Shown here in pieces: positions 12,619 to 38,932 of a stretch of DNA of 64,000 bases. The translations under genes were made by a program, and so were the position numbers. The notes under the pieces are model-generated. The model saw nothing but the letters and a program-made list of their open reading frames with translations, searched no databases and was not told where the DNA came from. Each line of letters begins with the position of its first letter. Position 1 is the first letter of the stretch. The stretch is from positions 62,001 through 126,000 of IMG/VR virus record IMGVR_UViG_3300031952_000001. One strand, given 5' to 3'.

Positions 12619-13470
12619 ATGACGATGAGAACGGAACGACGCATCGCTGATCACCACGAAGATCCTCGGGTCGCTCACCACCTGTGGGCCGCTGATGAGG
12701 ACGAGGGTGGCGTTCACGTCCGTCGCAACAGACAGGAGCCTGAGATGTTCCCTGGAGAGCCGAAGACCGCGAAGACCGCGGCGACGTTGTCGCAGAAGAT
12801 TGCGGCCGAGAAGTGCGTGGCCTGCCTGGGGCTGTTCGGTGCGGATCTGGTCGACGATCCGACCCTGAACAGTGACCTCCCTGTCGGGGTCGTGGGTCGC
12901 TTCAACGCGGCAGTTCGCGATGAAGGGGCTCCGAAGGTCCGTGACTGGGACGAGCTGCGCAGGGCGTTCGGGCCCGAGAAGATCGCGCACGCCCGGAAGG
13001 CCATCGGTCGCGGGATGCAGACCCGTCTGACTTCGAAGGCGTGGAACCTCCCGTTCCTGATGACGTCGGACATCCTGGACCAGTTCCCGAGCGTCCCTCT
13101 GGAGCGGGTGGCCCAGGCGGTCGAGTTCATCCGGTCGACTCCTCCCGATAGGCGGGTAGGGTCCACGATGGACTTCATCGCGCGTCGGGTGGCGAAGATC
13201 TTCGAGGAGTACAGCGATCCGAGTTCGCGCCGGCTCGCGGTCGACGAGAAGGCTTCGGCCTACTGGCAGTCCTACTACGGCCCATTCGGCAAGGAGCTGG
13301 TCCGTGAGGTGCAGAAGCGCGTCCGCGCCGACCTCGCCGGCATCTGGCTCCGGAAGAACGGGGTCGATGAGGTGGCGGCCGAATACTGGAGGAAGTATTT
13401 CGGTGAGTACGGAGACAAGTGGGTCACCGTGGTCCCGAAGAAGCTGTCCCCCTCGAACGCCAAGCGGTAG
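12619..13470 (+). CDS. hypothetical protein with two VDExAxxYWxxY[FY]Gx[FY]G modules
   Basis: Internal repeat shared with ORF 14556..18617. Confidence 0.7.
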   Translation: MTMRTERRIADHHEDPRVAHHLWAADEDEGGVHVRRNRQEPEMFPGEPKTAKTAATLSQKIAAEKCVACLGLFGADLVDDPTLNSDLPVGVVGRFNAAVRDEGAPKVRDWDELRRAFGPEKIAHARKAIGRGMQTRLTSKAWNLPFLMTSDILDQFPSVPLERVAQAVEFIRSTPPDRRVGSTMDFIARRVAKIFEEYSDPSSRRLAVDEKASAYWQSYYGPFGKELVREVQKRVRADLAGIWLRKNGVDEVAAEYWRKYFGEYGDKWVTVVPKKLSPSNAKR

Positions 13471-13472
13471 AA

Positions 13473-13817
13473 ATGCCGCTCGAAACCCCCGAAAATTTCC
13501 AGGAAATTCTGAAAGACTTCGTAGAGAAGCACGGTACCGGCAAGGCCAAGGGCCTCTCCGAGCTGCTGGCCCTCATGAAGAAGGCCAAGGCGAAGAAGCC
13601 TCCCGCAGCTCCTGAAGAGAAGAAGCCCGAGAACGACTGTCCTGAGGACGTTGAGGACTGTTCGGACGTCGTTAGTCCCTGTTGTAACGTTCCGGTATCG
13701 ACTGTCTTTGGAACTTTGCCTTTGAAGGTCAGTTGCAGGCAGTGCGGGAAGGAATACCTGCTGGGGGTGCTCATGAGGGGCCTTCTGAGGAAGTCGAAAA
13801 CGCCTGCCGTACTTTAG
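13473..13817 (+). CDS. hypothetical zinc-finger protein
   Basis: SPCCNVP ... CRQCGK. Confidence 0.6.
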   Translation: MPLETPENFQEILKDFVEKHGTGKAKGLSELLALMKKAKAKKPPAAPEEKKPENDCPEDVEDCSDVVSPCCNVPVSTVFGTLPLKVSCRQCGKEYLLGVLMRGLLRKSKTPAVL

Positions 13818-13874
13818 AACTTGGCAAAGACCTTGTGCTAGAGTTGCCTGCGAAGCTGAGATTCTTTGTAGACA

Positions 13875-14516
13875 ATGGAGAGGAAAATGAACCCATTCGG
13901 ACGCAACGTGTGCCAGGACCTCGCGGACCTCGCTGGACAGGACGTGCACGGCATCAACATGAGCCGACTTGCGGCTCGGTACTCCCAAGCCGCTGCCGAG
14001 CGCCACGCCCGGGATGAGGCCAACCAGGAAGAGTTCAACCTGAACCTTCCGATGGTGGAGATGGTCCAGAAGAGGATCGCGGAGCAGCTCGCTGCCGAGG
14101 CGGACGAGGTCAACGGCCACCTCCCCATCGCGTCCGTCTTCGATGCCTACCAGATCGTGAAGGCGCGGAAGGACGTGGACAAGGATCCGGGTCTGCGAGC
14201 GCTGTACGGGCACCTGGAGGCGATGTGGAAGAAGAACCGCTCGGCCTCCATCTCCGCGAACAGTTACCTCCGCCTCCACGATCACTACAAGAGCCGCTAC
14301 CCCAGGTCTGCCGCGGTGGAGGTGATCGAGGAGATCGGTCACAAGGGGTACGCCACGCTGCCGCTGTCCGATCTCACTCGCATCGCGTCGACCATCGAGA
14401 GCCAGGCGGACTTCGACAAGGCGATGATCTACTACGGGCTGGGTGGGCCGGCTCCGCATCAGGTGAAGGCGCGTCGGTACATCCTCGCGCTGCTGAACGG
14501 CGAGGACGCGGAGTAG
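13875..14516 (+). CDS. hypothetical protein
   Basis: Long ORF with genome-typical codon usage. Confidence 0.75.
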   Translation: MERKMNPFGRNVCQDLADLAGQDVHGINMSRLAARYSQAAAERHARDEANQEEFNLNLPMVEMVQKRIAEQLAAEADEVNGHLPIASVFDAYQIVKARKDVDKDPGLRALYGHLEAMWKKNRSASISANSYLRLHDHYKSRYPRSAAVEVIEEIGHKGYATLPLSDLTRIASTIESQADFDKAMIYYGLGGPAPHQVKARRYILALLNGEDAE

Positions 14517-14555
14517 TTCTTGGATTTCACGTCGTAGACGAAAAGGATAAGGAAC

Positions 14556-17500
14556 ATGCCGAACACGAGGACGCAAGGACACAAGGCCGACCGGCTTCAG
14601 CCCAAGAAGGTCGCGGAAGCTCTGTACCACGACGTGCCGGTGGAGCACCGGGGGTGGTTGATCCGCATCAACTCGAAGACGGACACCATCGAGGTGTTCC
14701 CCCCCAAGGGGGACACGCGGCATCAGGCGTTCGAGACCGACCTGTGCCACCTGGATCGGGCGGTCAGGGACTTCTGCAAGCTCGCGGACATGCCGATCCC
14801 CGGGGTGAACAAGCACCCCAAGGACCAGGTCAGTGTGGGCTCGCCTTCGAAGGTCCTCGGCCCCGACTCGTCCGTGGGTGAGGGCTGGAAGAACCCGAAG
14901 ATCAACGAGCGTCCGACCGGTCTGGATCAGAAGGGCACCTCGGCTCCGAACAAGAACCTCGGCGTCGACACCTCCAGCGAGAACGTTCCCCACTTCAATC
15001 CGCAGATCACCAAGCGCCCGAAGGATCCGGTCGGCCGCGGTGGGCTCCCGGACACGAGCCTCGGCGAGGACACCTCCAGCGCTCCGACGCACTGGAGGGA
15101 CCGGATCGTGAAGGTTCAGGAGGACGGCCGTACGGGTCGTCACGAGGCGCTCCACCCGGCCCAGAAGCCCCGCCGCGGCCCCGGCCAGCTCGGGTACGGC
15201 AAGGCCCAGATGGGTGAGGAAGCCGCTCCCATGGTGGACGGCTCCGGTCCGACGGACGGCATCATGGCGCGTCGTCGTCGCGCCGACTCCGATCCCTTCG
15301 ACGTCACCCCGGTCGAGGAGCCCGGCAAGAAGCTGAACAAGGGTGAGGATCCGTCCGATCCGGACGAGGTCATCTCCACCGAGCAGGGCGAGGGCGAGGA
15401 GCTGCGGACCGAGACGGAGGGCCAGCACGACAAGGAGGGCCGCTTCACGGACTCCTTCCAGTTCCCGAAGGTCGACGCTTCCGAAGCCTACCGCCAGATG
15501 ACGGCGAAGCGGCCGAGCGCGGAGCTTCTGAAGGACATCCTGGACCCGAAGAAGTGGGCCGCGGGGAACCTGATGGACCCCGCCGGCACCTTCGACGACT
15601 CCAACGAGCTGGAGCCCCTCCCTGACGAGGACATGCCGGGTCCGGTCGAGGACTCGGACGGTGGCTACTTCGAGCCGGACGCGGACGAGCTGGTCCTGTA
15701 CATCACGAACGACAACGACCTGTACGAGCGCAACCTCATGCCCATCGTCAAGAATCTCATGCGGAAGGTGAAGAACGGCACCTTCGACGAGACCCTTTCG
15801 GTCAAGCTCTGGGGGTACCTGGCGGAGGCCGGTGCGCAGAAGTACGCCAAGGAGATGGAGGGTTCCGTCCGCCCCATGCCATGGCACAAGCTCTTCCCGA
15901 CGTCGGTGAGGCAGCAGGCCGCGCAACAGCTGGCCGAGCACTACAACCCGGCTATTCTCGCCGGGGAGTTCGGCGACGTCTGGCCGAAGGCCGGTCAGGC
16001 AGCTCTTCCCGTCGAGGCCGATGGGGACGTCGAGGGTTGCTCCGATGGCAGCGCCAAGAAGGCTGTCCCGCCTTCCGGTGTCGACCAGGGCACGTTCCAA
16101 GGTGCCGAGGATGTCCCCCCGGGTGCGATGCCTGTGAGGGGCCGCCGTCAGGCAGGTCCCCGCCTCCGCGAGAACTGGGGTGCGGCCGGCGAGTATGGCC
16201 GTGATCTCGAAGCCGAGTCCGGTGAGGAGCTGCACGCTCTGACGCTGGCGCTCGGAGGGCAGGAGGTCGACTGGACTCCGTTCCGTCCGACCATGCCAGC
16301 TGGTGGGGAGGTCGAAGAGGGCGAGGAGCAGAAGAGCACCCAGCCTGAGGGCCCGAAGGCTCAAGGTGCAGGGGTTCCGGCCCCCGCGCCGGCAGCTCCG
16401 ATGACCGCTCGGATGCGTGAGGAGGTCGCGGGGAGGGGCCTGGGTTTTTTTAGCCAACGGGCCCCCTCCAAGGATGCCAGGCTCGACCCCAACGGCTTCA
16501 TGCAGCCGGACATCCAGAAGGGGACTTGGATCATTCTCGAAGGGGACAATCATGGAGAAGTGATCCCTGCGGATCTCGTCGACATGACAGAAGTTCAGGA
16601 GATGCAGCGGGTTCTCGCTGAGGATCCGAACGAGGTCATCGATCTGAAGGGTACCGATCTCGGTCAGTACACCGAGAACAACCAGCTGTACTCCATCGAG
16701 ATCAAGGATGGCTTCGGTGCCCGCTTGAGCGCTCCGGGCTACATGGATGCGACCGAGTGGGCGGTCTTCGACACCGAAGAGGAGGCGATGGCCTACCTCG
16801 AAGAGACCTACGGTGACGACGACTTCGAGGAGGAAGAAGAGGGTGAAGAGCACCTCGCTTCTCGTACCGCAGGTCCCGCCGACTTCATCGATCCGAACGA
16901 GCCCAAGCCCCAGGGCAATCCGACGGACGAGTTCCTCCACTCCGAGGGCAACCCCCCGGTCGACGAGGGTCAGCAGATGGGTGCTGGCAGTCCGGTCAAG
17001 CAGGGTCGCCGTCGCGCTCAGATGGGGAAGGGCGTGTACGAGGTTGTCGTCGGCAATATCGGTTCAGTCTATTACGGGAGCGATGAGCAAGAAGCCCATG
17101 ATGACTTCGTGGAGTACGTGGACCAGTCCAAGAGTGGTTACGGTCGAGCAAGTGGTGAGGACGTCACACTATTCTTGGATGGAGAGATCATCGAAGAGCA
17201 TCTGGGTGAGGTGAATCCAGAAGAGCAGTCGGGGGCTGGTCTTGGAACCGGTGGTGGTCCCGAGAAGCGGGTAAACTGGACGGATGAAGGCCAGGGCCCC
17301 TACCGCAACAAGAACTCACGCCGTCAGGCCGGCGGGTTCTACGAGGACGACGAGGTACCGGCTGGCGCTGGGGGGTCTTCCCAGAGCGTTGCGGACAACT
17401 ACATCAACGGCAACTGGGAAGACGTCATCAACGCCATCCAGGGGAACGTCAAGCTGGCCTTCGATGTTCTCGAAATGCTCCCTCCGGAAGCTCACGACGA

Positions 17501-18617
17501 GTACATCGAGTTCGTGAAGAAGGTCGCCTCGAAAGAGGCGGTCGACGAGAAGGCCAAGGACTACTGGGGTGGCTACTTCGGCGAGTACGGCAAGGACCTG
17601 ACCGAGGAGAAGAAGCTCACGAAGCCGCCGTCGGGTGGGTCCAAGAAGAAGGAAGACCCGAAGGAGGCTCGTCGGCAGGCCATGCTGAGGGCTCGGAAGC
17701 TCGCCCAGGCCGCGGCCCCGATAGCCCAGCCAGCTCCTCCGGCACTGTCACCGACCAACCCTCCGGCGAGTGGCGCAGCCCCGGCCGCCCCCGGCGCTCC
17801 CGCGGCTCCCAAGCCGGCCCCAGGCGCTCCTGGAGCGGCTCCTGGAGCGGCCCCGATGACCACCAAAGCGCCTCCGAGTCCCATGCCCGCGGGCTCGGGT
17901 GACGCCGGGTTGCAGACTCTCGGCTGGACGGCCGAGGAGATCAGCCTGATGGACGAGGAGGACAAGAAGAAGATCCTCCAGATCAAGCTCTCGAAGCCGG
18001 GTTCGGGCTCCAAGCCGAAGACGCCAGGCTCTGATTCCAAGGCTCCGGCAGGTCCGGGAGGCCCTGGGGGTGGTGGCAGCGGTCCCGTAGCGCCCACCAT
18101 CCCACCGTCGCCCCTCGCGCCGACCCCGGGCAACGTTCCGGCAGGTGCGACTCCGGCCCCGGGCGCTCCGAAACCGACCGCGGCTGTTCAGCAGCGTCTC
18201 GCGGCCATGATCCTGAAGAAGGTGGAGCGCCGCCGGGCGATCCGCGCCCAGGTCACTCCGCCGGGGTCGGCCGATCCGAACATGACGCCCCCGGTGGGCA
18301 CTTCCACGGCTGCCCAGCCAGGGGCTCCGGTTGCCGGCCCTACGGCCGGTCCGGGCAAGAGCGCCCCGGGTGCTGCTGCCACTCCTCCGAAGGCTCCTCC
18401 TCCGGGCGGTGAGGGCTCCGCAGACCAGAAGGCATTCGACATCCTCCAGGCGGTGCAGCAGGCTCCCGTGTCCGCCGCGTCTCCGGAGCAGGTTCTGAGC
18501 GCGAAGGTGTCGGAATTGGCTCGACGACTGCTCACTGAAATTGGTATGACGACCAGTGATGCAAAGCAGTTGTTCGGGATCCCGTCTGACGGCGGGCTGG
18601 ACAAGCTCTTCCAGTAA
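14556..18617 (+). CDS. 1353-aa acidic/Pro-rich multi-module protein (putative virion cargo polyprotein)
   Basis: Globular-looking modules separated by RR[QR]A/KAQ junctions; Pro/Ala/Gly-rich C-terminus. Confidence 0.75.
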   Translation: MPNTRTQGHKADRLQPKKVAEALYHDVPVEHRGWLIRINSKTDTIEVFPPKGDTRHQAFETDLCHLDRAVRDFCKLADMPIPGVNKHPKDQVSVGSPSKVLGPDSSVGEGWKNPKINERPTGLDQKGTSAPNKNLGVDTSSENVPHFNPQITKRPKDPVGRGGLPDTSLGEDTSSAPTHWRDRIVKVQEDGRTGRHEALHPAQKPRRGPGQLGYGKAQMGEEAAPMVDGSGPTDGIMARRRRADSDPFDVTPVEEPGKKLNKGEDPSDPDEVISTEQGEGEELRTETEGQHDKEGRFTDSFQFPKVDASEAYRQMTAKRPSAELLKDILDPKKWAAGNLMDPAGTFDDSNELEPLPDEDMPGPVEDSDGGYFEPDADELVLYITNDNDLYERNLMPIVKNLMRKVKNGTFDETLSVKLWGYLAEAGAQKYAKEMEGSVRPMPWHKLFPTSVRQQAAQQLAEHYNPAILAGEFGDVWPKAGQAALPVEADGDVEGCSDGSAKKAVPPSGVDQGTFQGAEDVPPGAMPVRGRRQAGPRLRENWGAAGEYGRDLEAESGEELHALTLALGGQEVDWTPFRPTMPAGGEVEEGEEQKSTQPEGPKAQGAGVPAPAPAAPMTARMREEVAGRGLGFFSQRAPSKDARLDPNGFMQPDIQKGTWIILEGDNHGEVIPADLVDMTEVQEMQRVLAEDPNEVIDLKGTDLGQYTENNQLYSIEIKDGFGARLSAPGYMDATEWAVFDTEEEAMAYLEETYGDDDFEEEEEGEEHLASRTAGPADFIDPNEPKPQGNPTDEFLHSEGNPPVDEGQQMGAGSPVKQGRRRAQMGKGVYEVVVGNIGSVYYGSDEQEAHDDFVEYVDQSKSGYGRASGEDVTLFLDGEIIEEHLGEVNPEEQSGAGLGTGGGPEKRVNWTDEGQGPYRNKNSRRQAGGFYEDDEVPAGAGGSSQSVADNYINGNWEDVINAIQGNVKLAFDVLEMLPPEAHDEYIEFVKKVASKEAVDEKAKDYWGGYFGEYGKDLTEEKKLTKPPSGGSKKKEDPKEARRQAMLRARKLAQAAAPIAQPAPPALSPTNPPASGAAPAAPGAPAAPKPAPGAPGAAPGAAPMTTKAPPSPMPAGSGDAGLQTLGWTAEEISLMDEEDKKKILQIKLSKPGSGSKPKTPGSDSKAPAGPGGPGGGGSGPVAPTIPPSPLAPTPGNVPAGATPAPGAPKPTAAVQQRLAAMILKKVERRRAIRAQVTPPGSADPNMTPPVGTSTAAQPGAPVAGPTAGPGKSAPGAAATPPKAPPPGGEGSADQKAFDILQAVQQAPVSAASPEQVLSAKVSELARRLLTEIGMTTSDAKQLFGIPSDGGLDKLFQ

Positions 18618-18627
18618 AGGAGTAGTC

Positions 18628-19176
18628 ATGGAGTCATTCGTTCTTCAGAATACCGGTCGAGGGCAGATCGCCTTCATGCTCAACCCTCCAGTCCACATGG
18701 AGGAGGGGATGCCGAAACACAAGAGGCGCAAGGCTCTCCGCGAGAACGTGCAGAGCATCGTGATCCCCCAGGCCGGCTCCGTCGACCTGGTGGAGAAGAC
18801 GGGCCTCTCGGTGAAGGTCTTGCGGCAGCTGCCCGAGATCCTCACCATTCTGCGCAACCCGAACGTGCGGTGGGTCGAGGATGTGAACGCACCGACCACT
18901 CCTCCAGCCGAGCCGAAGCCTGCGCCGCTACCTCCGGTGGAAGCTCCAAAGCCAGTTCCTGTTCCGGTCGAGCCCGAGCCCGCCCGTGAGGTGGTCGTTC
19001 CGCCTCCGCCGGCTCCGGTTGTGGAAGCGCCTCCGGCTCCGGAGCCCGAGAAGGCTCCAGAGGCTCCCCCGGCAGCGATGCCGGCCGGTCTGCCTCCGGG
19101 AGCGTCCCCAGAGCCGGTTCGTACGGGCAAGACCAAGGGTGGGTACAACAAGGCAAAAGGGAACTCGAAGCCCTAG
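18628..19176 (+). CDS. hypothetical protein with Pro-rich tail
   Basis: SD AAGGAG before ATG 18628. Confidence 0.7.
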   Translation: MESFVLQNTGRGQIAFMLNPPVHMEEGMPKHKRRKALRENVQSIVIPQAGSVDLVEKTGLSVKVLRQLPEILTILRNPNVRWVEDVNAPTTPPAEPKPAPLPPVEAPKPVPVPVEPEPAREVVVPPPPAPVVEAPPAPEPEKAPEAPPAAMPAGLPPGASPEPVRTGKTKGGYNKAKGNSKP

Positions 19177-19188: not shown

Positions 19189-19800
19189 TTGCTCGTCAAG
19201 CTCAACACCCGTGCTTTCGTGGACGACTTCGGGCTCCTCGTCGAGGGGCCCGAGCCTTTCATCCACATGTACGAGTCCGGTGTCGTGCGGGTGACCTCGG
19301 GCATGAAGATCATCCCGGTCGTGAAGGTCAAAGGCCGGTGGGTGGAGAAGGACGCCAAGCTCACTTGTGAGGTGGCCGACACCCACGAGAAGAAGATCCG
19401 CGGCTTGCAGATGCACACGGCCCTGGGGCGGAACAGAGGTCTGTTCTTCCCGTACGCAGGACCCACCGACGTCACCTTCCACCAAGGCACGGTCCCCTTC
19501 CCACTCGACATCATGTTCATCCGGGAGGGTTCCGTGATCCAGATCGAGCGCAACACGAAGGTGGGCGGTTCTGATCGGTGGTCCTGCAAGGGGTGCGACA
19601 GCGTGATCGAGGTGACCGCCGGATTCTGCGAGGACAAGAAGATCAACGTAGACGATCAGCTCATCTTCTTCGCCTACTCCGATCAGGACATCCAGGCCTA
19701 CGAGGCGGACAGGGTCGCGATCCAGAACGAGGAAGTGATCAACCCGAGCGAGTGCATCGCCAGCCTGGCGAGCGCGATAGTGGGTGGTGAAATTGACTGA
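19189..19800 (+). CDS. DUF192-family domain protein
   Basis: CEVADT..IRGLQ..RGLFF..TFHQGTVPFPLDIMFI..SVIEVTAG. Confidence 0.75.
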   Translation: MLVKLNTRAFVDDFGLLVEGPEPFIHMYESGVVRVTSGMKIIPVVKVKGRWVEKDAKLTCEVADTHEKKIRGLQMHTALGRNRGLFFPYAGPTDVTFHQGTVPFPLDIMFIREGSVIQIERNTKVGGSDRWSCKGCDSVIEVTAGFCEDKKINVDDQLIFFAYSDQDIQAYEADRVAIQNEEVINPSECIASLASAIVGGEID

Positions 19801-20167
19801 CAAGCTCCCAGATACGCTGTTCGGCTACATCCTGTACTTCGACGGTTCGGTGATGCGGGCTCTCTCTGATCGCAACACCGCAGAGAGCGTCTGGGAGGCG
19901 GTGTTCTCGGCGCGGGCGAAGCCGAGATCGATCATCAAGTTCTGGAACCCACCGAACGGTGGGAAGTACACGGACATCTGGGTGGACGCGACCAAGGTGA
20001 TCGCGGTGCGTACCGCTGACGAAGAGATCTCGATAGCGCAGCCCAATCTGGAGTTGCAGCGCAGGGCCGATCAGCAGCGGCGTGAGGCCCAGCATGCAGC
20101 CCAGCGGGGCGGTCGCGTGACCATAGGGCAGGAAGCCATCCCTCATGGGGCTGGTAGAAAAAGGTAG
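19784..20167 (+). CDS. hypothetical protein
   Basis: Operon-coupled ORF. Confidence 0.6.
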   Translation: MVKLTDKLPDTLFGYILYFDGSVMRALSDRNTAESVWEAVFSARAKPRSIIKFWNPPNGGKYTDIWVDATKVIAVRTADEEISIAQPNLELQRRADQQRREAQHAAQRGGRVTIGQEAIPHGAGRKR

Positions 20168-20173: not shown

Positions 20174-23100
20174 ATGTCGAAGTTCAACCAGCTGATGGAA
20201 AAAGAGCACGTTCGGAACCACCCGATGTTCCGAGGCTTCGATGATCGCCTCAAGGCGGCTCGCGAGAGGCTGAGCCGGAAGTCTGCCGCCCCCGATCTGA
20301 GGGACGTCTTCTCCTCCCAGAAGGCGGTGGGTCTCGGGACGAACGACCGCTCGGTGCGGGCGTACATCCAGGAGGCCGCCCTGTCGGCGCGCTCGGTGCT
20401 CGACATGTGCGAGTTCCCGATGCTGCCGCAGATCTCGTTCAACAACGTGAAGAGTGTCAAGATGGCCGCCCACGACGACAGCCAGGTCGTCGATGCGGAG
20501 ATCCTCTTCAACGTGCGCATCTGCACGAAGTCGGGAGCGATCCGGCAGGCGCTCATCCCCGTGGTCGTGTCCCGAGGCGTGGTCGTGCCGCCGTCGACCC
20601 TCATCTACGATCAGCAGATGAAGGTGATCGCGCAGAGCACCATCGACGAGATCGTCCAGCGGAACACCTCCTACCAGCTGCCGCCGATGCGCCGGATGTA
20701 CGATCCGCCGCTGCGCGGCGAGGAGCTGGATCGCGCCGCGTCCGAGCGGAACACGCTGGGCTGGATGCCGCGCGAGGTGGTCACGGACGGGATGGGGATC
20801 CGGCACAGCCGGCGTGAGGCCGCCTTCGAGTCCTACGCAATGAGTCTCACGGGCCAGGACCAGACCAACCCAGGCACGCCGAGCAGCCTGGCCGGTCAGC
20901 CTCCGGCCGGCGTCACGCAGAGTGACGCCACGCAGCTCTCGAACCCTGCGACGGATCCAACCATGGCTGGTGTTCCCGGTGGGGAGAAGACCCCCTACGG
21001 CCAGTACGCCGAGTCGGGGAGCGCGACGGACAGCTTGTACCGGCAGATCCTGGCGCAGCCGACGATCATGCAGCAGGTCCAGGACATCCTGACCCCCTCG
21101 CGGGAGACCCTCATTGACAACATCTCGCAGATGATCAGTCCGATGATGTCGGTGCTCGGTCTCCGGACGGAAGATGTCGAGTGGGACTTCCTGCTCGACG
21201 ACCTGAAGGCCGGGCTCGGCGGGACGACCGCCTCGAAGATCGGCAAGGCCGAGGTCCGCAAGGTCGCGCTCATGATCGCCGAGTACGCGACCGGCCGGCG
21301 CAGGTTCGGCCGGAGGCGGGCGGCAGCTGACACTGCGACCGCGCTCGCTGAGATGACGACCTACCTCCAGAGCGCGCAGGACACCTTCAAGCCGGACGAG
21401 CTGGCCTACTACCAGCAGATCGCGCAGGAGGCCCAGTCCGCGCTCCAGGGCGGCGACGAGCAGACGGCGAGGGACCTCCTGGTGGAGCTGGAGAACGCCT
21501 TCTCCTTCACCGACGTCCCGCAGGAGCAGGAGGTCCCGACCGACTACTGGCAGACCTTCACTGCGAACTGCAAGAAGCTCGCGCAGCAAACCAACCTCGT
21601 GAAGGAGCTGGAGGTCGACGAGGACGACAACCGGCCGATGAAGCGGTACATGCCGGCCGGGTACGATCTCGTGCTCGAAGACATGGTCAAGGCGGAAGAG
21701 GGCGGGCTGGACACGTTCCCGCGGCCGTACTCGCACATCGAGCGGAACTACATCCTCCGCAGGTACCCGACCTGCTCCCGGGACAAGTGGCTGCCGCACC
21801 TCATCAACGACGGCTTCGCGCTGAACCCGTACGGCAAGGGCCCGAACCGTGGTCGGCCGGTGCGGGAGGGCTCGAAGAAGGCAGGGCAAGCTCCCAACAT
21901 CATCGCCAACCTGGGGGATGTGAACTACATCGATTACGGCGGCCTCCTCATCGTGGACAACGGGGGTGGCCCGCAGGGCTGGCTTATCGAGGTGGACGAT
22001 TCCGACAGTGGTGGTGGTTGGCAGTGGGAGAAGACCGCGAAGTGGATGCTCTACAGGTTCGACATCGAGAAGTTCAAGATCGCCACCGACGAAAGCGGTT
22101 CGTATCTGGTTCCTGACTCCTACCAGCCCGAGTGGGGCCCCGCGTCGAAGTACGAGGAGTGGTTCGCGGACAAGCTGGGCGACGTAGCCGGTAGCTCGGG
22201 GTTGCCTGACCAGGACTTGATCTCAGATCTGACTTCAGATGATCCTGTGGTGCGCGGCGGGGCCTACAGAGAAATCATCGGCTACTTCGGTGCTCACGAG
22301 TTTGATTCGTACCCGGAGACGTACAACGCCAAGGAGATTCATGCGCTCTTTGGCGAGGAGTACCACGGCGGCGAAGACGAAGAGCTGGAAGAGGAGCCCG
22401 AGGAAGGCTTCGGCGAGGAGCCCGAGGCCCCCATCGAGCCCAAGCTCTCGCGGTCGGCTCAGATGGACGACGAGGGCGAGGAAGAGTCCTGGGAGCCGAA
22501 CGTCCGGGCGAAGAAGGACCTCAGGACTTCCGATGGAGACCGCATCAAGGCGGGCACCGGAGGGTTCCTGATGTGGGCTCGGGGGGACATGATCGAAGTG
22601 CTGGTCCCGCCCTCGATCCAGGACTCCTTCAAGCGGGAGGACTGGGAGGACATCGGTCCGGTGTCTCCGCGGTCCGCTCAGAACGAACCGTACCCGGGGA
22701 TGGCTGTTTCTATGGCTGTGGGCCAGGCCAAGCAATCCGGGGGCTCCGAAGAGGATGCGCTTCGGATTGCCCTGGAGAGCCCCGTGCTGAAAGGGGTACC
22801 TCGGGATCAGGTTGCCGAGATGATCCGTAAGGAGTGGTCCTGGGAGCCGAAATCTTCCACCCCTTCGACGGGGGGTCCTGGTTCCTTGGACGACGAGTTC
22901 GAGGAAGAGGATGAGATCGATCCGAACCTCAACCCCGTCATCTATCTCGACAACATGGATCACGAAGATGGGATGGTCACGGTGCACATCGCTGACCCCC
23001 GCGCAGGGGAGTTCGCGGAGAATGATCAGAGCATCCAGGGCTCCAACTGGGAGTCCGATGGTCCGGACTTCGCGTACGCGATCATCATGGACTCCCCGAC

Positions 23101-23203
23101 GCTCGTGGAAGACCTGAAGAAGGACGGGTACAACGTCAACGACGACGAATACTACCCGATGACAGCAGAGGAGCTTCAAGCTCTCGACCCCATGAACAGG
23201 TAG
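20174..23203 (+). CDS. 1009-aa multi-module acidic protein (putative virion cargo polyprotein)
   Basis: Junctions RREAA, RRRAAA, KKLAQ and RSAQ (twice). Confidence 0.75.
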   Translation: MSKFNQLMEKEHVRNHPMFRGFDDRLKAARERLSRKSAAPDLRDVFSSQKAVGLGTNDRSVRAYIQEAALSARSVLDMCEFPMLPQISFNNVKSVKMAAHDDSQVVDAEILFNVRICTKSGAIRQALIPVVVSRGVVVPPSTLIYDQQMKVIAQSTIDEIVQRNTSYQLPPMRRMYDPPLRGEELDRAASERNTLGWMPREVVTDGMGIRHSRREAAFESYAMSLTGQDQTNPGTPSSLAGQPPAGVTQSDATQLSNPATDPTMAGVPGGEKTPYGQYAESGSATDSLYRQILAQPTIMQQVQDILTPSRETLIDNISQMISPMMSVLGLRTEDVEWDFLLDDLKAGLGGTTASKIGKAEVRKVALMIAEYATGRRRFGRRRAAADTATALAEMTTYLQSAQDTFKPDELAYYQQIAQEAQSALQGGDEQTARDLLVELENAFSFTDVPQEQEVPTDYWQTFTANCKKLAQQTNLVKELEVDEDDNRPMKRYMPAGYDLVLEDMVKAEEGGLDTFPRPYSHIERNYILRRYPTCSRDKWLPHLINDGFALNPYGKGPNRGRPVREGSKKAGQAPNIIANLGDVNYIDYGGLLIVDNGGGPQGWLIEVDDSDSGGGWQWEKTAKWMLYRFDIEKFKIATDESGSYLVPDSYQPEWGPASKYEEWFADKLGDVAGSSGLPDQDLISDLTSDDPVVRGGAYREIIGYFGAHEFDSYPETYNAKEIHALFGEEYHGGEDEELEEEPEEGFGEEPEAPIEPKLSRSAQMDDEGEEESWEPNVRAKKDLRTSDGDRIKAGTGGFLMWARGDMIEVLVPPSIQDSFKREDWEDIGPVSPRSAQNEPYPGMAVSMAVGQAKQSGGSEEDALRIALESPVLKGVPRDQVAEMIRKEWSWEPKSSTPSTGGPGSLDDEFEEEDEIDPNLNPVIYLDNMDHEDGMVTVHIADPRAGEFAENDQSIQGSNWESDGPDFAYAIIMDSPTLVEDLKKDGYNVNDDEYYPMTAEELQALDPMNR

Positions 23204-24502: not shown

Positions 24503-24503
24503 A

Positions 24504-25929: not shown

Positions 25930-26244
25930 ATGCTGGCGTTCGGCATCACCGACTCTGGGCTCCTTCGTCTGTCGCAGCTCTTGGCTCCTGCCGCGGAGCA
26001 GGAGAGTGCTCAAAACCCTCAAGTCGAGATCTACTGGTGGGAGGAGGACAACCCCCTCGAAGGCGGTTGGGTCTGGCACTTCGTAGGGGTAGACGAGCTT
26101 GTACATCCCATCGAAGGCAAGCTGGGCAAGAATCCTTCTGCGGATGACGAGGACCTGAAGTTCGAAGCCACCATGGATCCGGAGTTTCCTGGCGGCGACG
26201 TTCGGTTCGTGGTAGACCGGGACAACACTCCGATCTTCGGGTAG
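25930..26244 (+). CDS. small protein with the shared N-terminal leader
   Basis: MLAFGITDSGLLRLSQ. Confidence 0.65.
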   Translation: MLAFGITDSGLLRLSQLLAPAAEQESAQNPQVEIYWWEEDNPLEGGWVWHFVGVDELVHPIEGKLGKNPSADDEDLKFEATMDPEFPGGDVRFVVDRDNTPIFG

Positions 26245-30341: not shown

Positions 30342-30893
30342 ATGAGAACCATTTTTCTTGCCTGTATCGCGATTGGATCGTGCCTGTTCGTGGACTCTTT
30401 GGATGCCCAGTGCTGCCGGGTCCAGCTGGCTGTGAGCGGCCAGAACCAGAACGTGGTCGGGATCATCGTCGGCATGTCGGAGGCCAACGCCACGCCCGGC
30501 AAGGTCGTGGCTGTGGCAGAGGGTGCGGCCAAAGGGGCAACGTGCGTCGACTACACGTTCCTGAAGGACGCGCGGGGCAAGATGACCGAGTGCAAGTACG
30601 ACTGCTACCTCATCTTCGGAGGGGCCGTCTGCCGGGAGAACATCTGCGACTACGTGATCTGTAATGAGCCACTTGGTAGCTATTGCTCAAACCCAACGGG
30701 CCCGAATCCCGGGAAGTTGCTCACGATGGCGAGCGGCGGCATCTGCGATCCGACCGGAGATTTCGCCCCGATTCCCGGGGAGTGCTACTACCCGGAGATC
30801 GAGATCGACTGCGGGAGCGCTGAGGCCTGCGTGACTGTTGGTTGGGGGAGAGACTTCTGTCGGGTTCTTCCACCGAAGAAAGATCGTCGGTAG
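30342..30893 (+). CDS. secreted Cys-rich protein
   Basis: Signal peptide ending SLDA-Q; 14 Cys in the mature part. Confidence 0.6.
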   Translation: MRTIFLACIAIGSCLFVDSLDAQCCRVQLAVSGQNQNVVGIIVGMSEANATPGKVVAVAEGAAKGATCVDYTFLKDARGKMTECKYDCYLIFGGAVCRENICDYVICNEPLGSYCSNPTGPNPGKLLTMASGGICDPTGDFAPIPGECYYPEIEIDCGSAEACVTVGWGRDFCRVLPPKKDRR

Positions 30894-30984
30894 GGATGAG
30901 GGCGCTCTCGCCTGGTTCAGAGACGTCCCCCCTGAGCTTGGGAGTGCCTTCTTCCGTGCCGACGACGAAGGGTTGAGGATCTGC

Positions 30985-31683
30985 ATGGCTAAAAACATTG
31001 CGAAGGGCGGCCGAGACAACTACCCAACACCCCAGATCTACGCGGACTGGGCCATCGAGCGGGCACTCGGGCTGATGCCTGGCACTCCGAACCCCGTCCT
31101 TGGCTTGGAGCCCGGGTGTGGAGCCACGGCACCCTTCCTGTCGGCCTTGGTCGACCAAGCTCCTGCGAGGGGTGTCGGGGTCGAGTCGGAGGTCTGGGTG
31201 CCGAAGCTCTCCGCCGTGACGGGGGAGAACCTGAAGATCCGGATGGGGACCGACTTCTTGGACCCCTCGTGCGATCACCTCTGGATGCCGGAGCCCGACA
31301 CGAAGTTTTTCCTCATCGCGACGAACCCTCCCTTCTCTCTCTGCGAGGAGTTCATGGACAAGTCCCTGAGGCTCCTGCACCCGATGGGGGTCATGGTGTT
31401 CCTGCTCCGCATGGCGATCATGGGTTCAAAGAAGCGGCTGGACTTCTGGAAGAAGCACATGCCTCTGGAGATCGCCCACTTCGTCCGCAGGATCAGCTTC
31501 GACGGCACGAGCACGGACTACGCCGAGTATGCCTGCTTCTTCTGGGCCGGCGAGGAGCTGGAGGACATGTGGCACCGCCACCGCGGCAGCTGCTCGACAG
31601 CGTTCTATCTGGTGAACAATGTGATGGAGAGTGTCAACGAGAAGGGCTGCCTGGAGGAGATCGGGGCACCACCGTTTGTATGA
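30985..31683 (+). CDS. N6-adenine DNA methyltransferase (orphan)
   Basis: DNYPTP, LEPGCG (SAM-binding), TNPPF (catalytic), YACFFW. Confidence 0.85.
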   Translation: MAKNIAKGGRDNYPTPQIYADWAIERALGLMPGTPNPVLGLEPGCGATAPFLSALVDQAPARGVGVESEVWVPKLSAVTGENLKIRMGTDFLDPSCDHLWMPEPDTKFFLIATNPPFSLCEEFMDKSLRLLHPMGVMVFLLRMAIMGSKKRLDFWKKHMPLEIAHFVRRISFDGTSTDYAEYACFFWAGEELEDMWHRHRGSCSTAFYLVNNVMESVNEKGCLEEIGAPPFV

Positions 31684-31701: not shown

Positions 31702-31989
31702 ATGTCAGTTGAAGCGTTGGGGAAGAAGAAGATCGAAGAGATCATCCAGCTGCGAAGCAAGGGCAAGACGATCTCGGAGACGGCGTGGACGCTCGGGATC
31801 GCCCCGTGGCATGTCGCGTACATCTCCAGGTTCCTGAAGCTGTGCGTGACGGCCGAGGAGTTCCAGTGGATCGAGGAGGAGGCCGAGGCCAACAACTTCG
31901 GCACGGTGGGCGAGTTCGTCATGGACGTGTTCAACCGGACCTACGAGGAGTTCTACAAGAAGGCTCCGCGCAAGAAGAAGTCCGCCTGA
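31702..31989 (+). CDS. small HTH protein
   Basis: LRSKGKTISETAWTLGI. Confidence 0.55.
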   Translation: MSVEALGKKKIEEIIQLRSKGKTISETAWTLGIAPWHVAYISRFLKLCVTAEEFQWIEEEAEANNFGTVGEFVMDVFNRTYEEFYKKAPRKKKSA

Positions 31990-32708
31990 TGGGAAAGAAG
32001 GCCGCCAAGAGAGACCCTTCTGTAGTTGTTGGGTATGTGCGGGTTTCGATGGACCGTCAGAAACTAGGACCTGTGGTCCAGAGAAAGATTCTGGCTGGGT
32101 GGTGCGTCTTGCGAGGTTTGCATCTTGCTGCGGTATTTACGGACAAGGGTGTTTCTGGAGGGCTCCAGGTAGACCAGAGACCAGGGTTACAAGAGGCCCT
32201 CGTTGCGGTACGGGCTTATAATGCTGGCACCCTTCTTGTTGCTAGCCGGGATCGTCTTTCCCGCGACATCGTAACTGCTACGATGATTGAGAGAGGCTTG
32301 AATCGTTCGGGCACCTCTATTGTATCAGCAGATGGCCTTGGCAACGGAGACAGCCCTGCGGAGGTGTTCATTCGTACGGTTGTGAATGGCATGGCGCAGT
32401 ATGGACGTGCTGTTATATCTGAAAGAACCCGCGCCGCTCTGAGATTGAAGGTCTCTCGTGGAGAGAAGACGGGTGGTGCCGCCCCTTATGGATACCAGTT
32501 AGCAAGAGACGAAATTCATCTCGTTCAAATGAAGGAGGAGATGAAAGTAATTGCGAGGATACAAAAACTTCATAAAGAGGGGCTTTCGATTCGAAGAATT
32601 GCAGACTTACTGACTGAAGAAGAGACTCCTAGTCGAGGACATCGGTGGCATCGTACCACGGTTGAGCGTTTGCTCAACCGAGACGATAGGAAGAGGGATG
32701 GTGCCTGA
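31989..32708 (+). CDS. serine recombinase (resolvase catalytic domain plus short recombinase/HTH domain)
   Basis: GYVRVS, DKGVSG, RPGL, SRDRLSR, ISERTRAAL, GGAAPYGY; AT-richer DNA. Confidence 0.88.
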   Translation: MGKKAAKRDPSVVVGYVRVSMDRQKLGPVVQRKILAGWCVLRGLHLAAVFTDKGVSGGLQVDQRPGLQEALVAVRAYNAGTLLVASRDRLSRDIVTATMIERGLNRSGTSIVSADGLGNGDSPAEVFIRTVVNGMAQYGRAVISERTRAALRLKVSRGEKTGGAAPYGYQLARDEIHLVQMKEEMKVIARIQKLHKEGLSIRRIADLLTEEETPSRGHRWHRTTVERLLNRDDRKRDGA

Positions 32709-34408: not shown

Positions 34409-35593
34409 ATGATCCGCACCTGCAAAGTGAAGCTCGGTCGTGCGCCAAAACAGGAGGCGAAGCTCACTTACGTTTTGGGTCTCTGTTGTGACCTCTACAA
34501 CGCAGCTCTCCAGCAGCGACGGGATGCCTGGGCTAAGCAGAAGGTCTCGCTTTCGTACTATGCGCAGACCAAGGAACTCACTCAGCTCCGTGCAGATGAT
34601 GAGGAGTACCGGCGGCTGCCGGCTCAGATGACTCGCATGACGTCACTATACCGCGTAGATAGGGCCTTTCAGGGGTTTTGCGGACGGTGTAGACGCGGTG
34701 AGAATCCCGGCTTCCCTCGGTTCCGCAGCCGAGATCGTTTCTCTACTTTGATGTTCTCTACGCAGGATTGGCGCATCAAGGGCAAGAGCCTGATATTGAA
34801 GAACGATGCAGATCCTATTGTCTTGCAAATGCGTAACACGATTCATCATGAGGGCCAGATCAAAGGTCTTCGTGTTGTCCGAAGTGCAACGCGATGGTGG
34901 GCGCATTTTCTTGTGGATGTAGGCCCTACCCCAGCTGTAAAGAAGTCCGATCACGGCGTCGGGATCGACGTTGGTCTTCGAACTTTCGCGACTCTGTCCG
35001 ACGGTAACGTCGTCGAACATCCGCGGTTCTTGAAGCAGAGCCTGGAGCAGCTGAAGTCGGTCCAGCAGGAGCTGAGCCGGAAGAAGAGGGGCTCCAAGAA
35101 CCGCGCGAAGGCGAAGCTCGTCGTCGCGCGGGTACACGAGAAGATCGCGAATCGTCGTCGAGACTTCGTACATCAGACCGTGTCCTCCTTGGTGAAGAAG
35201 TACGACGGGTTTGCGCTGGAGAAGCTCGACGTTTGCGCCATGACAAGCACGGAGCGCAAAGTCGAGGGTTTGGACAAGAAGCAATCTCGTGGTCTCCGAA
35301 GGGGGATCATGGACTCTGGCTGGTCTCTGTTCGGTGCACACCTGGCCTCCAAAGCGGAAGAAGCTGGGCTGCCGGTTGTGCACGTCGATCCGAAAGGCAC
35401 TTCGCAGAGATGTTCGGCTTGCGGAACCATAGTGCGAAAAACACTTCGGGACCGTGTGCACGAATGCTTTGCCTGTGGTCTCGTGCTGGATCGGGATGAG
35501 AACGCAGCCAGGAACATCTACGACCTGGGGCTCAGGTCGGCGTCCGGAAGCGCAGCAACAGCTAGTTGTGCTGAAGGCGCGGAGGTTCTGTGA
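34409..35593 (+). CDS. tnpB: TnpB RNA-guided endonuclease (IS200/IS605 family), no TnpA
   Basis: LYNAAL, PRFRS, RuvC residues GIDVG, FALEKL and DRDENAARNI, zinc finger CSAC/CFAC. Confidence 0.93.
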   Translation: MIRTCKVKLGRAPKQEAKLTYVLGLCCDLYNAALQQRRDAWAKQKVSLSYYAQTKELTQLRADDEEYRRLPAQMTRMTSLYRVDRAFQGFCGRCRRGENPGFPRFRSRDRFSTLMFSTQDWRIKGKSLILKNDADPIVLQMRNTIHHEGQIKGLRVVRSATRWWAHFLVDVGPTPAVKKSDHGVGIDVGLRTFATLSDGNVVEHPRFLKQSLEQLKSVQQELSRKKRGSKNRAKAKLVVARVHEKIANRRRDFVHQTVSSLVKKYDGFALEKLDVCAMTSTERKVEGLDKKQSRGLRRGIMDSGWSLFGAHLASKAEEAGLPVVHVDPKGTSQRCSACGTIVRKTLRDRVHECFACGLVLDRDENAARNIYDLGLRSASGSAATASCAEGAEVL

Positions 35594-36216: not shown

Positions 36217-36783
36217 ATGAATCGATACCAGGAAACCCTTTGCAAGTACGCTCAAGATCTGTCAACGGAGACCGTCACTCCAAGCTCCCAGACCGACTCC
36301 TCGACGATGGATCCCTCCCAGCTCCAGCCGGGGCAGCCGGTCTACTCCCCCGAGGGCAAGGAGTTCGTGGTCCTGAACAACCCCGCGGGGGAGTCGCAGA
36401 AGGTGGTCATGCCTTCGGATCAGCAGGGTTCACAGCTCCCGCAAGGGGTGACGACCCTTGACGATACTGAGCTGTCGACGGAGTACACACTCTCATCCCC
36501 CTCTACCGAGACAAAGATCCAGTCCTCTCGCAAGAGGGCCGCGGAGCACATGAACCTGCCGTCCGGGTACGCGAAGAGCATCTCGACCGGCGAGGGCAAG
36601 AAGACGGAGACGGCCGGCCTGAGGATCGGACAAGAGGGCTACGTCGACATCATGACCTCGATCCAGGACATGGTCGAGGCCGGGTACGACACGGTCGACG
36701 TGGTCTTGAACATTGGCGAGCTGTACCCCCGGGACCTCGGTGAAAGGGTCCTGGAGGAAGCTCGCGAAAGAGGGATACTCTGA
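36217..36783 (+). CDS. hypothetical protein
   Basis: RKRAA junction; acidic. Confidence 0.65.
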   Translation: MNRYQETLCKYAQDLSTETVTPSSQTDSSTMDPSQLQPGQPVYSPEGKEFVVLNNPAGESQKVVMPSDQQGSQLPQGVTTLDDTELSTEYTLSSPSTETKIQSSRKRAAEHMNLPSGYAKSISTGEGKKTETAGLRIGQEGYVDIMTSIQDMVEAGYDTVDVVLNIGELYPRDLGERVLEEARERGIL

Positions 36784-37256
36784 TGCGTAAAGGGATCTCG
36801 GATCAAGGGCTGAAGAGACTTTCCGCTGCCGTCAGGAAGAACGGCTGGAATCCTGCGAACCCCCACTGGGATCCTTCCAAGGAGCCTTCCAAAGAGCAGT
36901 GGAAAGAGATCGACGAGGGCCGTCGGAAGAACGCTCCGCCTGAGCCGGGGGAGGGGAAGGGGCATCTCTCTCAAGGTTCTACTATTCGTCTTGAGAGCGG
37001 AGACTTTGGGTGGGACTTCCTCATCGTCAACGAGGACACTGGAGAAGACATTCTCATCCAGACGGACTGGGACTACCCCGGGGTTGCGACTACGTTCGGG
37101 TGGCCTGGTCACGAGCACGATTCTACCGATGGAACCATCGACTGTCCCGAATGTGGCAAGAGCGCGATGGAAATGATCAACGAAGCCCGGGAGTGGCTCA
37201 GTGATCACATTGGGGACGTTGCCGAGGACCCTGGGTACTTCGGCGGGGACGAGTAG
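36783..37256 (+). CDS. acidic protein with the shared leader
   Basis: MRKGISDQGLKRLSA. Confidence 0.7.
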   Translation: MRKGISDQGLKRLSAAVRKNGWNPANPHWDPSKEPSKEQWKEIDEGRRKNAPPEPGEGKGHLSQGSTIRLESGDFGWDFLIVNEDTGEDILIQTDWDYPGVATTFGWPGHEHDSTDGTIDCPECGKSAMEMINEAREWLSDHIGDVAEDPGYFGGDE

Positions 37257-37270
37257 GAAGGAACTTCAAG

Positions 37271-38932
37271 ATGCGTAAAGGCATTGTGGACGATGGGTAC
37301 GGCAGGATCGCTGGGAGCGTTCTGAAGAAGACTGCCTTGATGGAGGACGAGTACGCCCAGGATCTCGCTGAGAAGCTCGTCGGCAACTGGCAGAAGTTCG
37401 AGTCGTTCGGGTGGGGCAGCCAGCCCGAGGAGAACCCGGAGAACTGGACCATCGTCTACACCTCGAACAGGGACTCGGGGCTCACCGATCAGGCGAACGC
37501 TGCGGCCATCGAGGAGATCATGGGCCAGTTCCCCGAGGACCAGGTCGTGGCGGAGAGCCACGGGCACTGGGCTGTCGGTCATGTGGACGGCTACTCGATC
37601 CGTGTGTACGAGCCCGACGGTACCCTCACCCCGGCGTTCAAGGCGTGGTCTGAGATCCAGACGTCCTTGGAGAACTACCCTGTTCTCGATGAGAGCAAAT
37701 ACTCTGAGATGGAGTACGAAGCCTCTCTCAAAAACTGTGCGCAGGCTGTCGCGCACTACATGAACCGCCATCCCGACGAGAGGGTGCAGGACTTCTACAC
37801 GGATGCGGATGATGAGCAGCTTGGGGCGGAGTTCTACCAGTGGGCTTCCGATTCAGGGGTCGACACTTCCAGCAGCGACGATCAAGGGTACTACCCTGAC
37901 GACAGCGACATCGAGGAGTGGGTTCAGGAGGTCATCGTCCCAAAGCTCCGTGCGTGGGAGCCCGGTGAGGAAGGCTACGAAGAACCCGATCCCCTCGCGG
38001 AGGGCTTCGCCACGGGTCCCGTGCCCGTAGACCCCCGACAGACCTCGCTCCCCTTCAAGGGTGGCCGGCGCAGGGCCCAGGCAGCCCCACAGCTCCCCTC
38101 GGACGAGGAGGAGCTGAACCCCGACGAGATGGAGGAGATGTCCCCTACGCCGGAGCAGCAGGGCCTGGAGAAGTTCGACTGGAACGACTACATCTGGGGT
38201 CCGTTCCGCAAGAAGCCCGGTCTGCGTCTCAGGGCCCAGATGAGCACTCAGGACGACGCCATCGTACGGATGGTCGAGCAGGAGGATGCCCGTCTGGTGA
38301 AGTACCGCGGCGGGTTCGCACTCGTTCCGGTCGACGGTTACGCCTATCCGGTCGATCAGGCCGGCGCGGAGCTGGCGCTCGCTCACGGGGCCGAGGACTA
38401 CACCCAGCCGAAGCAGAAGGCTGGTGCAAGGGAGGTAGGAATGTACAAAGGGGTTCCGGACGAGGGCCTGGAGAGGCTCGCAAGGATCTTCAAGGCGCAG
38501 TCGGATCCGGGCGTGAGCCCCGCCGGCCCGCTTCCCGGTGATGAGGATCTGGACGAGGCCGAGTCCGAGGGGGAGGCCGAGGAGCGCGGAGAGATGATCT
38601 CCCCCGAGCAAGCTCTGTCAAAGGCGAAGGAGCTGTGGGACGAGGACACCGCGGCGCACATCGTCTCTGCCCAGGGTCAGAAGGGGTACGATGCCTGGTT
38701 CATTGAGGCCGAAGTCTTCGTCCCGAGCGAGGAGATGGCGGACTTCCTTCAGTTCATCGAAGCTCCGGGTCTGGAGGAGTGGAAGGACGCTCTGTACGAG
38801 GCTTACGACGATCAGCCCGGTGTCGAGGGCAACCCTGGTCGGTGGGCTCATACTAGCTCCGTGAGCAACGTCATCGAGGAGAGCAACGGCATCAGGTTCA
38901 CGCTGACCTACAGCGCGTTCATGGACATCTGA
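37271..38932 (+). CDS. multi-module acidic protein with the shared leader and an internal second leader/start at 38441
   Basis: MRKGIVDDGYGRIA; RRRAQ and RLRAQ junctions; internal MYKGVPDEGLERLA. Confidence 0.75.
   Translation: MRKGIVDDGYGRIAGSVLKKTALMEDEYAQDLAEKLVGNWQKFESFGWGSQPEENPENWTIVYTSNRDSGLTDQANAAAIEEIMGQFPEDQVVAESHGHWAVGHVDGYSIRVYEPDGTLTPAFKAWSEIQTSLENYPVLDESKYSEMEYEASLKNCAQAVAHYMNRHPDERVQDFYTDADDEQLGAEFYQWASDSGVDTSSSDDQGYYPDDSDIEEWVQEVIVPKLRAWEPGEEGYEEPDPLAEGFATGPVPVDPRQTSLPFKGGRRRAQAAPQLPSDEEELNPDEMEEMSPTPEQQGLEKFDWNDYIWGPFRKKPGLRLRAQMSTQDDAIVRMVEQEDARLVKYRGGFALVPVDGYAYPVDQAGAELALAHGAEDYTQPKQKAGAREVGMYKGVPDEGLERLARIFKAQSDPGVSPAGPLPGDEDLDEAESEGEAEERGEMISPEQALSKAKELWDEDTAAHIVSAQGQKGYDAWFIEAEVFVPSEEMADFLQFIEAPGLEEWKDALYEAYDDQPGVEGNPGRWAHTSSVSNVIEESNGIRFTLTYSAFMDI

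Follow-up and report, generated by a model that had tools for sequence, protein, structure and literature searches.

Which signal is carried by the short basic-alanine-glutamine junctions that recur in several large proteins of an uncultured virus, and are these proteins cut there into smaller pieces? The question is raised by a stretch of 64,000 nucleotides, hereafter the window, with a G+C content of ~60%, which corresponds to positions 62,001-126,000 of a metagenomic contig of 211,982 bp (JGI 3300031952, Ga0315294_10000012). A first-pass annotation of this stretch had described [RK]xxA-Q junctions recurring between acidic modules of open reading frames (ORFs) located between positions 12619 and 38932, and had proposed that a head protease cuts these proteins after the alanine, to release small effector domains injected along with the DNA. 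The motif is a real and conserved protein-level signal, placed at the joints between protein modules. Owing to the conservation of the motif, to the cassette boundaries associated with it, to the context of the gene cluster and to the occurrence, on the same contig, of a gp21-like protease next to a scaffold-like protein with the same joint, the best reading is that of protease-processed, head-associated polyproteins, to which we assign a probability of about 0.5.

All the junctions quoted as examples in the first-pass annotation are present at the positions given for them. The signal that recurs is stricter than [RK]xxA-Q, since the consensus of the joints reads [S/A/G]-[KR]-x-A-Q followed by acidic residues. 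Within the block, [RK]x0-2AQ occurs 20 times, whereas 8.6 occurrences are expected after shuffling of the whole proteins and 9.4 after local shuffling over 60 residues, and none of the shuffles (0/500) reaches the observed count; outside the block, the window contains 9 occurrences for 8.6 expected, so that the motif is enriched in the block with respect to its surroundings. The four large ORFs of 1353, 1009, 553 and 478 amino acids (aa), referred to below as the carriers, contain 14 sites against 4.0-4.7 expected, and the tripeptide AQM occurs 4 times against an expectation of 0.4. The block is nevertheless not continuous, as the first-pass annotation had drawn it: the motif-bearing ORFs occupy both of its ends, from 12.6 to 26.2 kb and from 36.8 to 39.3 kb, but the ~10 kb in between (26-36 kb) consist of unrelated or mobile genes devoid of the motif, including a methyltransferase, a serine recombinase and TnpB.

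Because the motif was defined after the data of the window had been viewed, more weight has to be given to independent sequences, in which the enrichment is even stronger. Fifteen relatives were detected for the 1353-aa ORF, and the clustering at 50% of a library of 1.8 billion proteins yields 282 representatives for the family of the 1009-aa ORF. The motif was counted 431 times in 154 representatives of the latter family, for an expectation of 115, and the 169 sequences related to the two largest ORFs contain 357 copies of [KR]xAQ against 56 expected (6.4 times). An unbiased scan of the relatives identified AQ as the most over-represented dipeptide (z ~19), while RxA and KxA rank at the top of the one-gap pairs, after CxC. 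In contrast, no enrichment was found among the 169 relatives (1.0-1.2 times the expectation) for [LI]xE (1.19 times), [SAG]xE (1.02 times) and [VLI]xAS. Once a single conserved site of the N-terminal domain has been removed, Lys or Arg stands two places before the alanine in 49% of the AQ sites, with a preference for Ser, Arg or Ala three places before it and an enrichment in Asp/Glu afterwards.

Synonymous codons vary among the copies of the motif and no ribosome-binding sequence was found before the Met of the four AQM sites; the signal therefore operates at the protein level and does not mark internal starts, and the idea of Ala-Gln-Met sites serving as translation starts was rejected for the latter reason. 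More generally, a by-product of an Ala-, Gln- and Arg-rich low complexity, or a series of internal starts at the Met residues that follow some joints, is a highly improbable origin for the motif. The composition of the proteins is indeed biased, and one internal Met, at 38441, is preceded by a strong ribosome-binding site; however, a mere effect of composition is rejected by both the local and the global shuffles, by the control provided by the rest of the window and by the 169 independent proteins, and internal starts are contradicted by the four AQM sites.

Depending on the relative, modules are gained, lost or exchanged at the joints. Residues 822-925 of the 1353-aa ORF form an insert of ~100 residues, held between GRRRAQ and SRRQAG, which is absent from the closest relative P0013, where a lone RRQAG occurs, and a 1732-aa relative of the same ORF displays several extra cassettes with RRxAQ at the bounds of each. 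Similarly, the 205-kb relative L094 of the 553-aa ORF contains an 80-aa cassette, the insertion of which coincides exactly with the RRRAQ joint and which is flanked on either side by RRRAQ, in two copies that differ at four synonymous positions, and an unrelated module replaces the one located downstream of FKAQ. Joints such as LSRSAQ-MDDE, RRVAQ-MDDE, RRNAQ-MSED and SKTAQ-QD, together with similar ones, stand between modules that vary among the members of the 1009-aa family. In 17 distant relatives, 1009-aa-like proteins carry, as a fusion, the C-terminal module of the 478-aa ORF, and cassettes are common to both carrier families. Of the homology breakpoints defined by BLAST, which took over from the automatic gap boundaries of MAFFT alignments in this analysis, 17-23% lie at 12 residues or less from a motif, a proximity shown by 8.9% of random positions.

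Cassette gain and loss that map exactly onto the motif, and breakpoints that are enriched near it, would also be expected of a motif that is never cut, either a linker or boundary signature kept by cassette recombination or a short motif for the binding of, e.g., DNA, scaffold or portal, in proteins working as intact chains. The lone RRRAQ of the window even resembles a hybrid of the two L094 copies, as would result from a crossover inside the joint. We consider this explanation unlikely, taking into account that the copies differ synonymously and use many codons, which indicates a selection on amino acids and not on DNA, and that joints are conserved where no cassette varies. The latter include the invariant GKAQM of the 1353-aa family and the sites near residues 35-40 of the 1009-aa-like proteins, where many members possess K-[RH]-A-Q and the protein of the window has RKSAA. 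In addition, a fixed Ala-Gln preceded by basic and followed by acidic residues, in disordered linkers, has the typical look of a protease site.

The disorder of the linkers is apparent in the AlphaFold2 model of the 1009-aa ORF, which comprises confident domains at residues 1-210, 281-445, 490-555 and 841-890. Most of the joints, located at residues ~216, 470, 568, 762 and 835, fall in segments with a predicted local distance difference test (pLDDT) score below 50, between domains scoring above 90. The same ORF also carries RREAA and RRRAAA, both listed as junctions in the first-pass annotation; RRRAAA (residues 380-385) belongs in the model to a conserved, moderately confident folded segment and is probably structural, not a joint. 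The quality of a model of the 553-aa ORF, for which two sequences were available, was insufficient for any use. This ORF is one of five that begin with the leader MxxGIxDxGLxRL (at 23465, 25930, 36783, 37271 and 38943), and a sixth copy of the leader occurs internally at 38441, where it is conserved, including its Met, in L094. This internal leader is preceded by a strong ribosome-binding site, so that the 553-aa ORF either results from two paralogues fused in frame or contains an internal start.

Little of the carriers is recognised by existing resources. Pfam and PHROGs gave no family for the carriers and recognised almost none of the cassettes, and the Pfam scan of 71 members of the carrier families returned nothing but DUF5661, in two members, and KOW, in one. 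Foldseek found no PDB match for the 1009-aa model, whose sole viral match is presumably Rctr197k_043, and the ESM Atlas gave no lead. A catalytic role of the conserved carrier domains was rejected, no invariant set of Ser, His or Cys being found across 78 sequences. Three tandem copies of P-x-G-L-[DP]-x-x-LG-x-D-[ST]-S, conserved throughout the family, occur at residues ~100-180 of the 1353-aa ORF (window 14850-15100). Another element, AVDxxAxxYWxxYFG[ED]YGK, is present in two copies in the 283-aa ORF and in a single copy in the 1353-aa ORF (~17538-17609), and recurs in the cluster proteins of distant relatives (Rctr197k_036, L001, L004); it may function as a docking motif.

A cut at the joints calls for an enzyme. 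The head module of the contig, located by means of the highly conserved capsid protein of the clade (>500 clusters at 90% identity), lies at 198.7-212 kb (locus L068) and contains the portal, a 352-aa MuF-like protein, a protease, a 724-aa scaffold-like protein, a 263-aa protein and the major capsid protein. The prohead protease whose existence elsewhere was implied by the first-pass annotation is thus encoded ~120 kb away on the same contig, as a T4 gp21-like enzyme, of the same kind as phiKZ gp175 (phrog_18299, E = 5e-30), showing ~30% identity with the gp21-type proteases of Erwinia Y3-like jumbo phages, of cluster C mycobacteriophages and of Rhodococcus phage E3, as well as with annotated prohead proteases of Gordonia phages. 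The adjacent scaffold-like protein, the C-terminus of which matches the C-terminal part of the protease fusion of Virus Rctr197k, possesses REAL-RRRAQ-EQ at residue 276, exactly at the boundary between a variable low-complexity region and a conserved region. The four nearest relatives with coverage of the region retain this joint, in the form xRRAQ or IRAQ, but more distant ones do not. The joints are most likely cut sites of the phage's own T4 gp21-like head maturation protease. A cut between Ala and Gln fits the P3-x-P1 register of the protease superfamily and is plausible; a cut after Gln, the amide analogue of Glu, seems equally possible.

The genes of the two largest carriers belong to a conserved cluster, in which a 1353-aa-like protein, a ~200-aa protein, a DUF192 protein, a ~100-aa protein and a 1009-aa-like protein follow one another; the cluster, or at least the pair formed by DUF192 and the 1009-aa-like protein, is present in five genomes. 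In L001, L004 and L005 the motif does not extend beyond the cluster. Four adjacent cluster proteins of L005 hold 26 sites against ~4 expected, and the downstream genes contain almost none; in this relative DUF192 forms an internal part of a protein that has five joints, and one of the four motif-rich proteins includes a 2H phosphoesterase domain, found in that relative only. In Virus Rctr197k, which was reached only from distant members of the carrier family, the 1009-aa-like gene directly precedes a series of genes that runs from the large terminase through a 2175-aa protein, the portal and a protease-scaffold fusion to the major capsid protein. In L005/L011, the large terminase occurs less than 2 kb past the cluster and comes before the portal, which bears an intein, and a MuF-like protein; the protease and capsid genes of L005 were not found within the contig stretch that was walked.

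Taken together, these data are consistent with the following scheme. The carriers belong to an uncultured clade of jumbo phages and consist of small, mostly acidic modules strung on conserved carrier domains, each module being bounded by [S/A/G]-[K/R]-x-A-Q and acidic residues. They would enter the prohead during assembly, the head protease would cut them at the joints into separate pieces, and the pieces would be delivered along with the DNA. The effector role suggested for the modules derives by analogy from the concept of polyvalent proteins and from the single 2H phosphoesterase module mentioned above.

The head-associated part of the proposal put forward by the first-pass annotation finds support in the protease, in the scaffold joint and in two relatives whose cluster lies beside terminase and portal; other data weigh against it. 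The cluster adjoins terminase and portal in only two of the five genomes examined, not in L001, L004 or the window genome, where it stands among replication genes, ~120 kb from its own head genes, and Rctr197k, which offers the clearest head-module context, displays a weak enrichment of the motif. Neither the terminase nor the capsid protein shows an accessible motif: the terminase of L011 has no site and its portal is at chance, and the two sites of the capsid protein both lie in the folded core, its N-terminal region being devoid of a conserved [KR]xAQ. The capsid sites indicate that the motif by itself does not imply cutting, and the capsid N-terminus, which is too variable, was discarded as an independent test. 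The L068 portal has two sites against 0.5 expected, yet it contains intein inserts and one of the sites may belong to the intein. Gap boundaries counted on the MAFFT multiple alignments gave noisy results, with a modest excess near motifs. Finally, all the characterised gp21-like proteases cleave their substrates after Glu residues and not at Ala-Gln.

Both the Glu specificity of these enzymes and the location of the cluster among replication genes would suit a processing in the cytoplasm by another protease (the PhageMetallopep protein, the DUF192 protein or a host enzyme), with products that remain intracellular instead of being packaged. A PF18894 PhageMetallopep gene occurs on the same contig, ~1 kb upstream of the start of the window (L003 6862-7554), and DUF192, the one invariable neighbour of the carriers, is fused in L005 to a protein with five joints. 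We regard this possibility as quite unlikely: DUF192 is without known catalytic activity, and no function was found for it in the literature; the PF18894 gene is placed between a clamp-loader-like gene and RecA; the cluster adjoins terminase and portal in two relatives; and the scaffold-like protein located next to the head protease has the same conserved joint.

The concept of processing is already known from several systems, and the novelty lies in the motif, in the families of the carriers and in their organisation into cassettes. The maturation and release sites of herpesvirus assemblin, a protease of the same superfamily, consist of [V/L]-x-A followed by Ser. The carriers would share with them the P3-x-P1 register, an alanine at P1 and a fixed residue at the position that follows, provided that cutting occurs between Ala and Gln, but they differ by a basic P3, by the Gln that follows and by the nature of the substrates, which are cassette carriers and not only protease and scaffold; as noted above, [VLI]xAS is not enriched. 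With the MuF or SPP1 gp7 fusions, the carriers have in common a conserved carrier domain, a variable C-terminal cargo and, in relatives, a head-module context; unlike those fusions, they give no Phage_Mu_F hit, and a separate MuF-like gene follows the portal. With respect to a chymotrypsin-like (3C-like) protease, of the type that cleaves polyproteins after Gln, no peptidase family was found among the 84 ORFs of the window or in the carrier families, the remainder of the contig having been scanned in part.

The closest resemblance is offered by the internal and ejection proteins processed by gp21-type enzymes, such as IPI-III and Alt of T4, the inner-body proteins of phiKZ and 201phi2-1, and gp53 and gp54 of SPN3US with its protease gp245. 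This last enzyme cuts after A-X-E (P3-P2-P1) and removes the propeptides of ejection proteins, sometimes at several sites per propeptide (PMC10052503). Like these substrates, the carriers coexist with a homologous protease in the window genome, comprise several large acidic proteins with a recurring short motif and several sites per precursor, and begin with an N-terminal segment that resembles a propeptide ending at a joint. In contrast, they use K/R-x-A-Q instead of L/I-x-E or A/S/G-x-E, they represent new families without Pfam or PHROG matches, known here from sequence alone, and their joints separate exchangeable cassettes, not merely propeptides. For polyvalent proteins, the release of modules by proteolysis has been proposed (Iyer et al. 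2017, PMC5512222), and in the parts of that account drawn upon here these proteins resemble the carriers in being large and multi-modular, with an architecture that varies among relatives and a location near packaging genes in some genomes; the 2H phosphoesterase of one carrier-cluster relative is among the domain types listed there. Unlike the polyvalent proteins, as far as these parts describe them, the carriers revealed in Pfam scans no zincin-like peptidase, ADP-ribosyltransferase, PBECR, ArdC, MuF fusion or embedded peptidase, and they display a defined junction motif, for which no equivalent was found in the same parts of the account.

Table 1. Coordinates of the carriers, their joints and associated genes (positions refer to the window unless another locus is given).
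Feature	Position	Strand	Remarks
283-aa ORF	12619-13470	+	Head of the cluster; two YWxxYFGxYG motifs, one RVAQ
213-aa ORF	13875-14516	+	Homologous (tblastn) to Rctr197k_034, to the N-terminus of the L004 large protein and to part of the L001 797-aa protein
1353-aa carrier	14556-18617	+	N-terminal, middle and C-terminal segments conserved; variable cassettes between K/R-x-A-Q joints
KAQ, 1353-aa ORF	15201-15209	+	In the invariant GKAQMGEE joint; K at 15201
RRQAG, 1353-aa ORF	16143	+	
RRRAQ joint, 1353-aa ORF	17007-17021	+	N-terminal flank of the ~100-aa cassette
RRQAG joint, 1353-aa ORF	17319-17333	+	C-terminal flank of the cassette begun at RRRAQ 17007
RKLAQ, 1353-aa ORF	17694-17708	+	Ala-Gln invariant in the family (A1050-Q1051)
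IRAQ, 1353-aa ORF	18240-18251	+	Gln invariant in the family (Q1232)
182-aa ORF	18628-19176	+	Counterpart of a ~200-aa gene at the same place in syntenic clusters of relatives, by position and size only
DUF192 protein	19189-19800	+	Pfam 2e-19; always just upstream of the 1009-aa-like gene (synteny, five genomes)
127-aa ORF	19784-20167	+	REAQ; ~100-aa gene at the same position in two relatives
1009-aa carrier	20174-23203	+	Folded domains 1-210, 281-445, 490-555, then variable cassettes
KKLAQ joint, 1009-aa ORF	21572-21586	+	Low-confidence linker; conserved in the family
RSAQ joint, 1009-aa ORF	22451-22462	+	LSRSAQ-MDDE; conserved in relatives with different adjacent modules
RSAQ joint, 1009-aa ORF	22670-22681	+	Immediately before the confident small helical domain, residues 841-890
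345-aa acidic ORF	23465-24502	+	N-terminal leader MxxGIxDxGLxRL
478-aa ORF	24492-25928	+	RKRAQ at 25374-25388
104-aa ORF	25930-26244	+	Leader-bearing
Methyltransferase	30838-31683		Helps to divide the motif block
RKRAA	~36529		
157-aa ORF	36783-37256	+	Leader-bearing
553-aa ORF	37271-38932	+	Three joints
RRRAQ joint, 553-aa ORF	38066-38080	+	Place of the 80-aa cassette of L094
RLRAQ joint, 553-aa ORF	38225-38239	+	
Internal leader copy (MYKGVPDEGLERLARIFKAQ), 553-aa ORF	38441-38500	+	Strong ribosome-binding site upstream; ends in the FKAQ joint (38489)
105-aa ORF	38943-39260	+	Leader-bearing
Separate MuF-like gene	L011 14460-16364		Weak Pfam Phage_Mu_F hit
Portal	L068 49-4338 (contig ~198.7-203.0 kb)		Intein and LAGLIDADG inserts, as in the L005/L011 portal
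352-aa MuF-like protein	L068 4335-5393		KTAQ-D at residue 50; MuF-like by position and Cys motif, no family hit
302-aa head maturation protease	L068 5966-6874 (contig ~204.7-205.6 kb)		phrog_18299, E = 5e-30

Among cultured phages, nucleotide searches and protein searches with the large ORFs found no close relative of the window. The recognisable genes that surround the motif block are devoted to DNA metabolism (RecA/UvsX with an intein, SbcCD, ThyX and a topoisomerase-like protein), and replication genes and small genes were the only ones met when the neighbourhood on the contig was walked outward from the window. The RecA/UvsX gene (1456-3795, +) is split by its intein, which starts with a Cys after FINQIR, includes a LAGLIDADG-like block and ends in THN; the G+C content falls to 0.50 across the insert. 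Other recognisable genes, the methyltransferase and the pair of serine recombinase and TnpB, lie inside the block. The serine recombinase (31785-32708, +) and the TnpB or Cas12f-like gene (34409-35593, +), with two small ORFs between them, have the look of an IS607-type insertion. In the bulk Pfam scan of the 84 ORFs of the window, one ORF matches a Thoeris anti-defence Tad2-like domain, and other matches correspond to DnaJ, a GDSL lipase (46859-47449) and DUF7168/DUF2786. On the minus strand, positions 53698-62760 are occupied by ~20 small ORFs without family matches, with reversed GC and AT skews, which probably form an early-gene block. Virus Rctr197k (L008) possesses two annotated CRISPR (clustered regularly interspaced short palindromic repeat) arrays, at 10803-12317 and 19281-19535, beside transposase-like genes.

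A broader interpretation, which we put forward tentatively and consider rather unlikely as a whole, is that of a widespread uncultured clade of jumbo phages endowed with a cassette system for virion-delivered proteins, in which K/R-x-A-Q would serve both as a gp21-type cut site of new specificity and as the joint for the gain and loss of cassettes, the modules making up a large pool of injected proteins for host takeover or anti-defence. If the joints are cut, they would introduce a new specificity in the gp21/assemblin family of proteases and would provide a simple sequence rule by which virion proteins that undergo processing could be recognised in a large uncultured clade of phages. Hundreds of large unannotated proteins could then be divided into candidate functional modules, testable, e.g., against bacterial defence systems, and the carriers would represent a clear case, in a DNA phage, of a polyprotein-style organisation associated with the exchange of cassettes.

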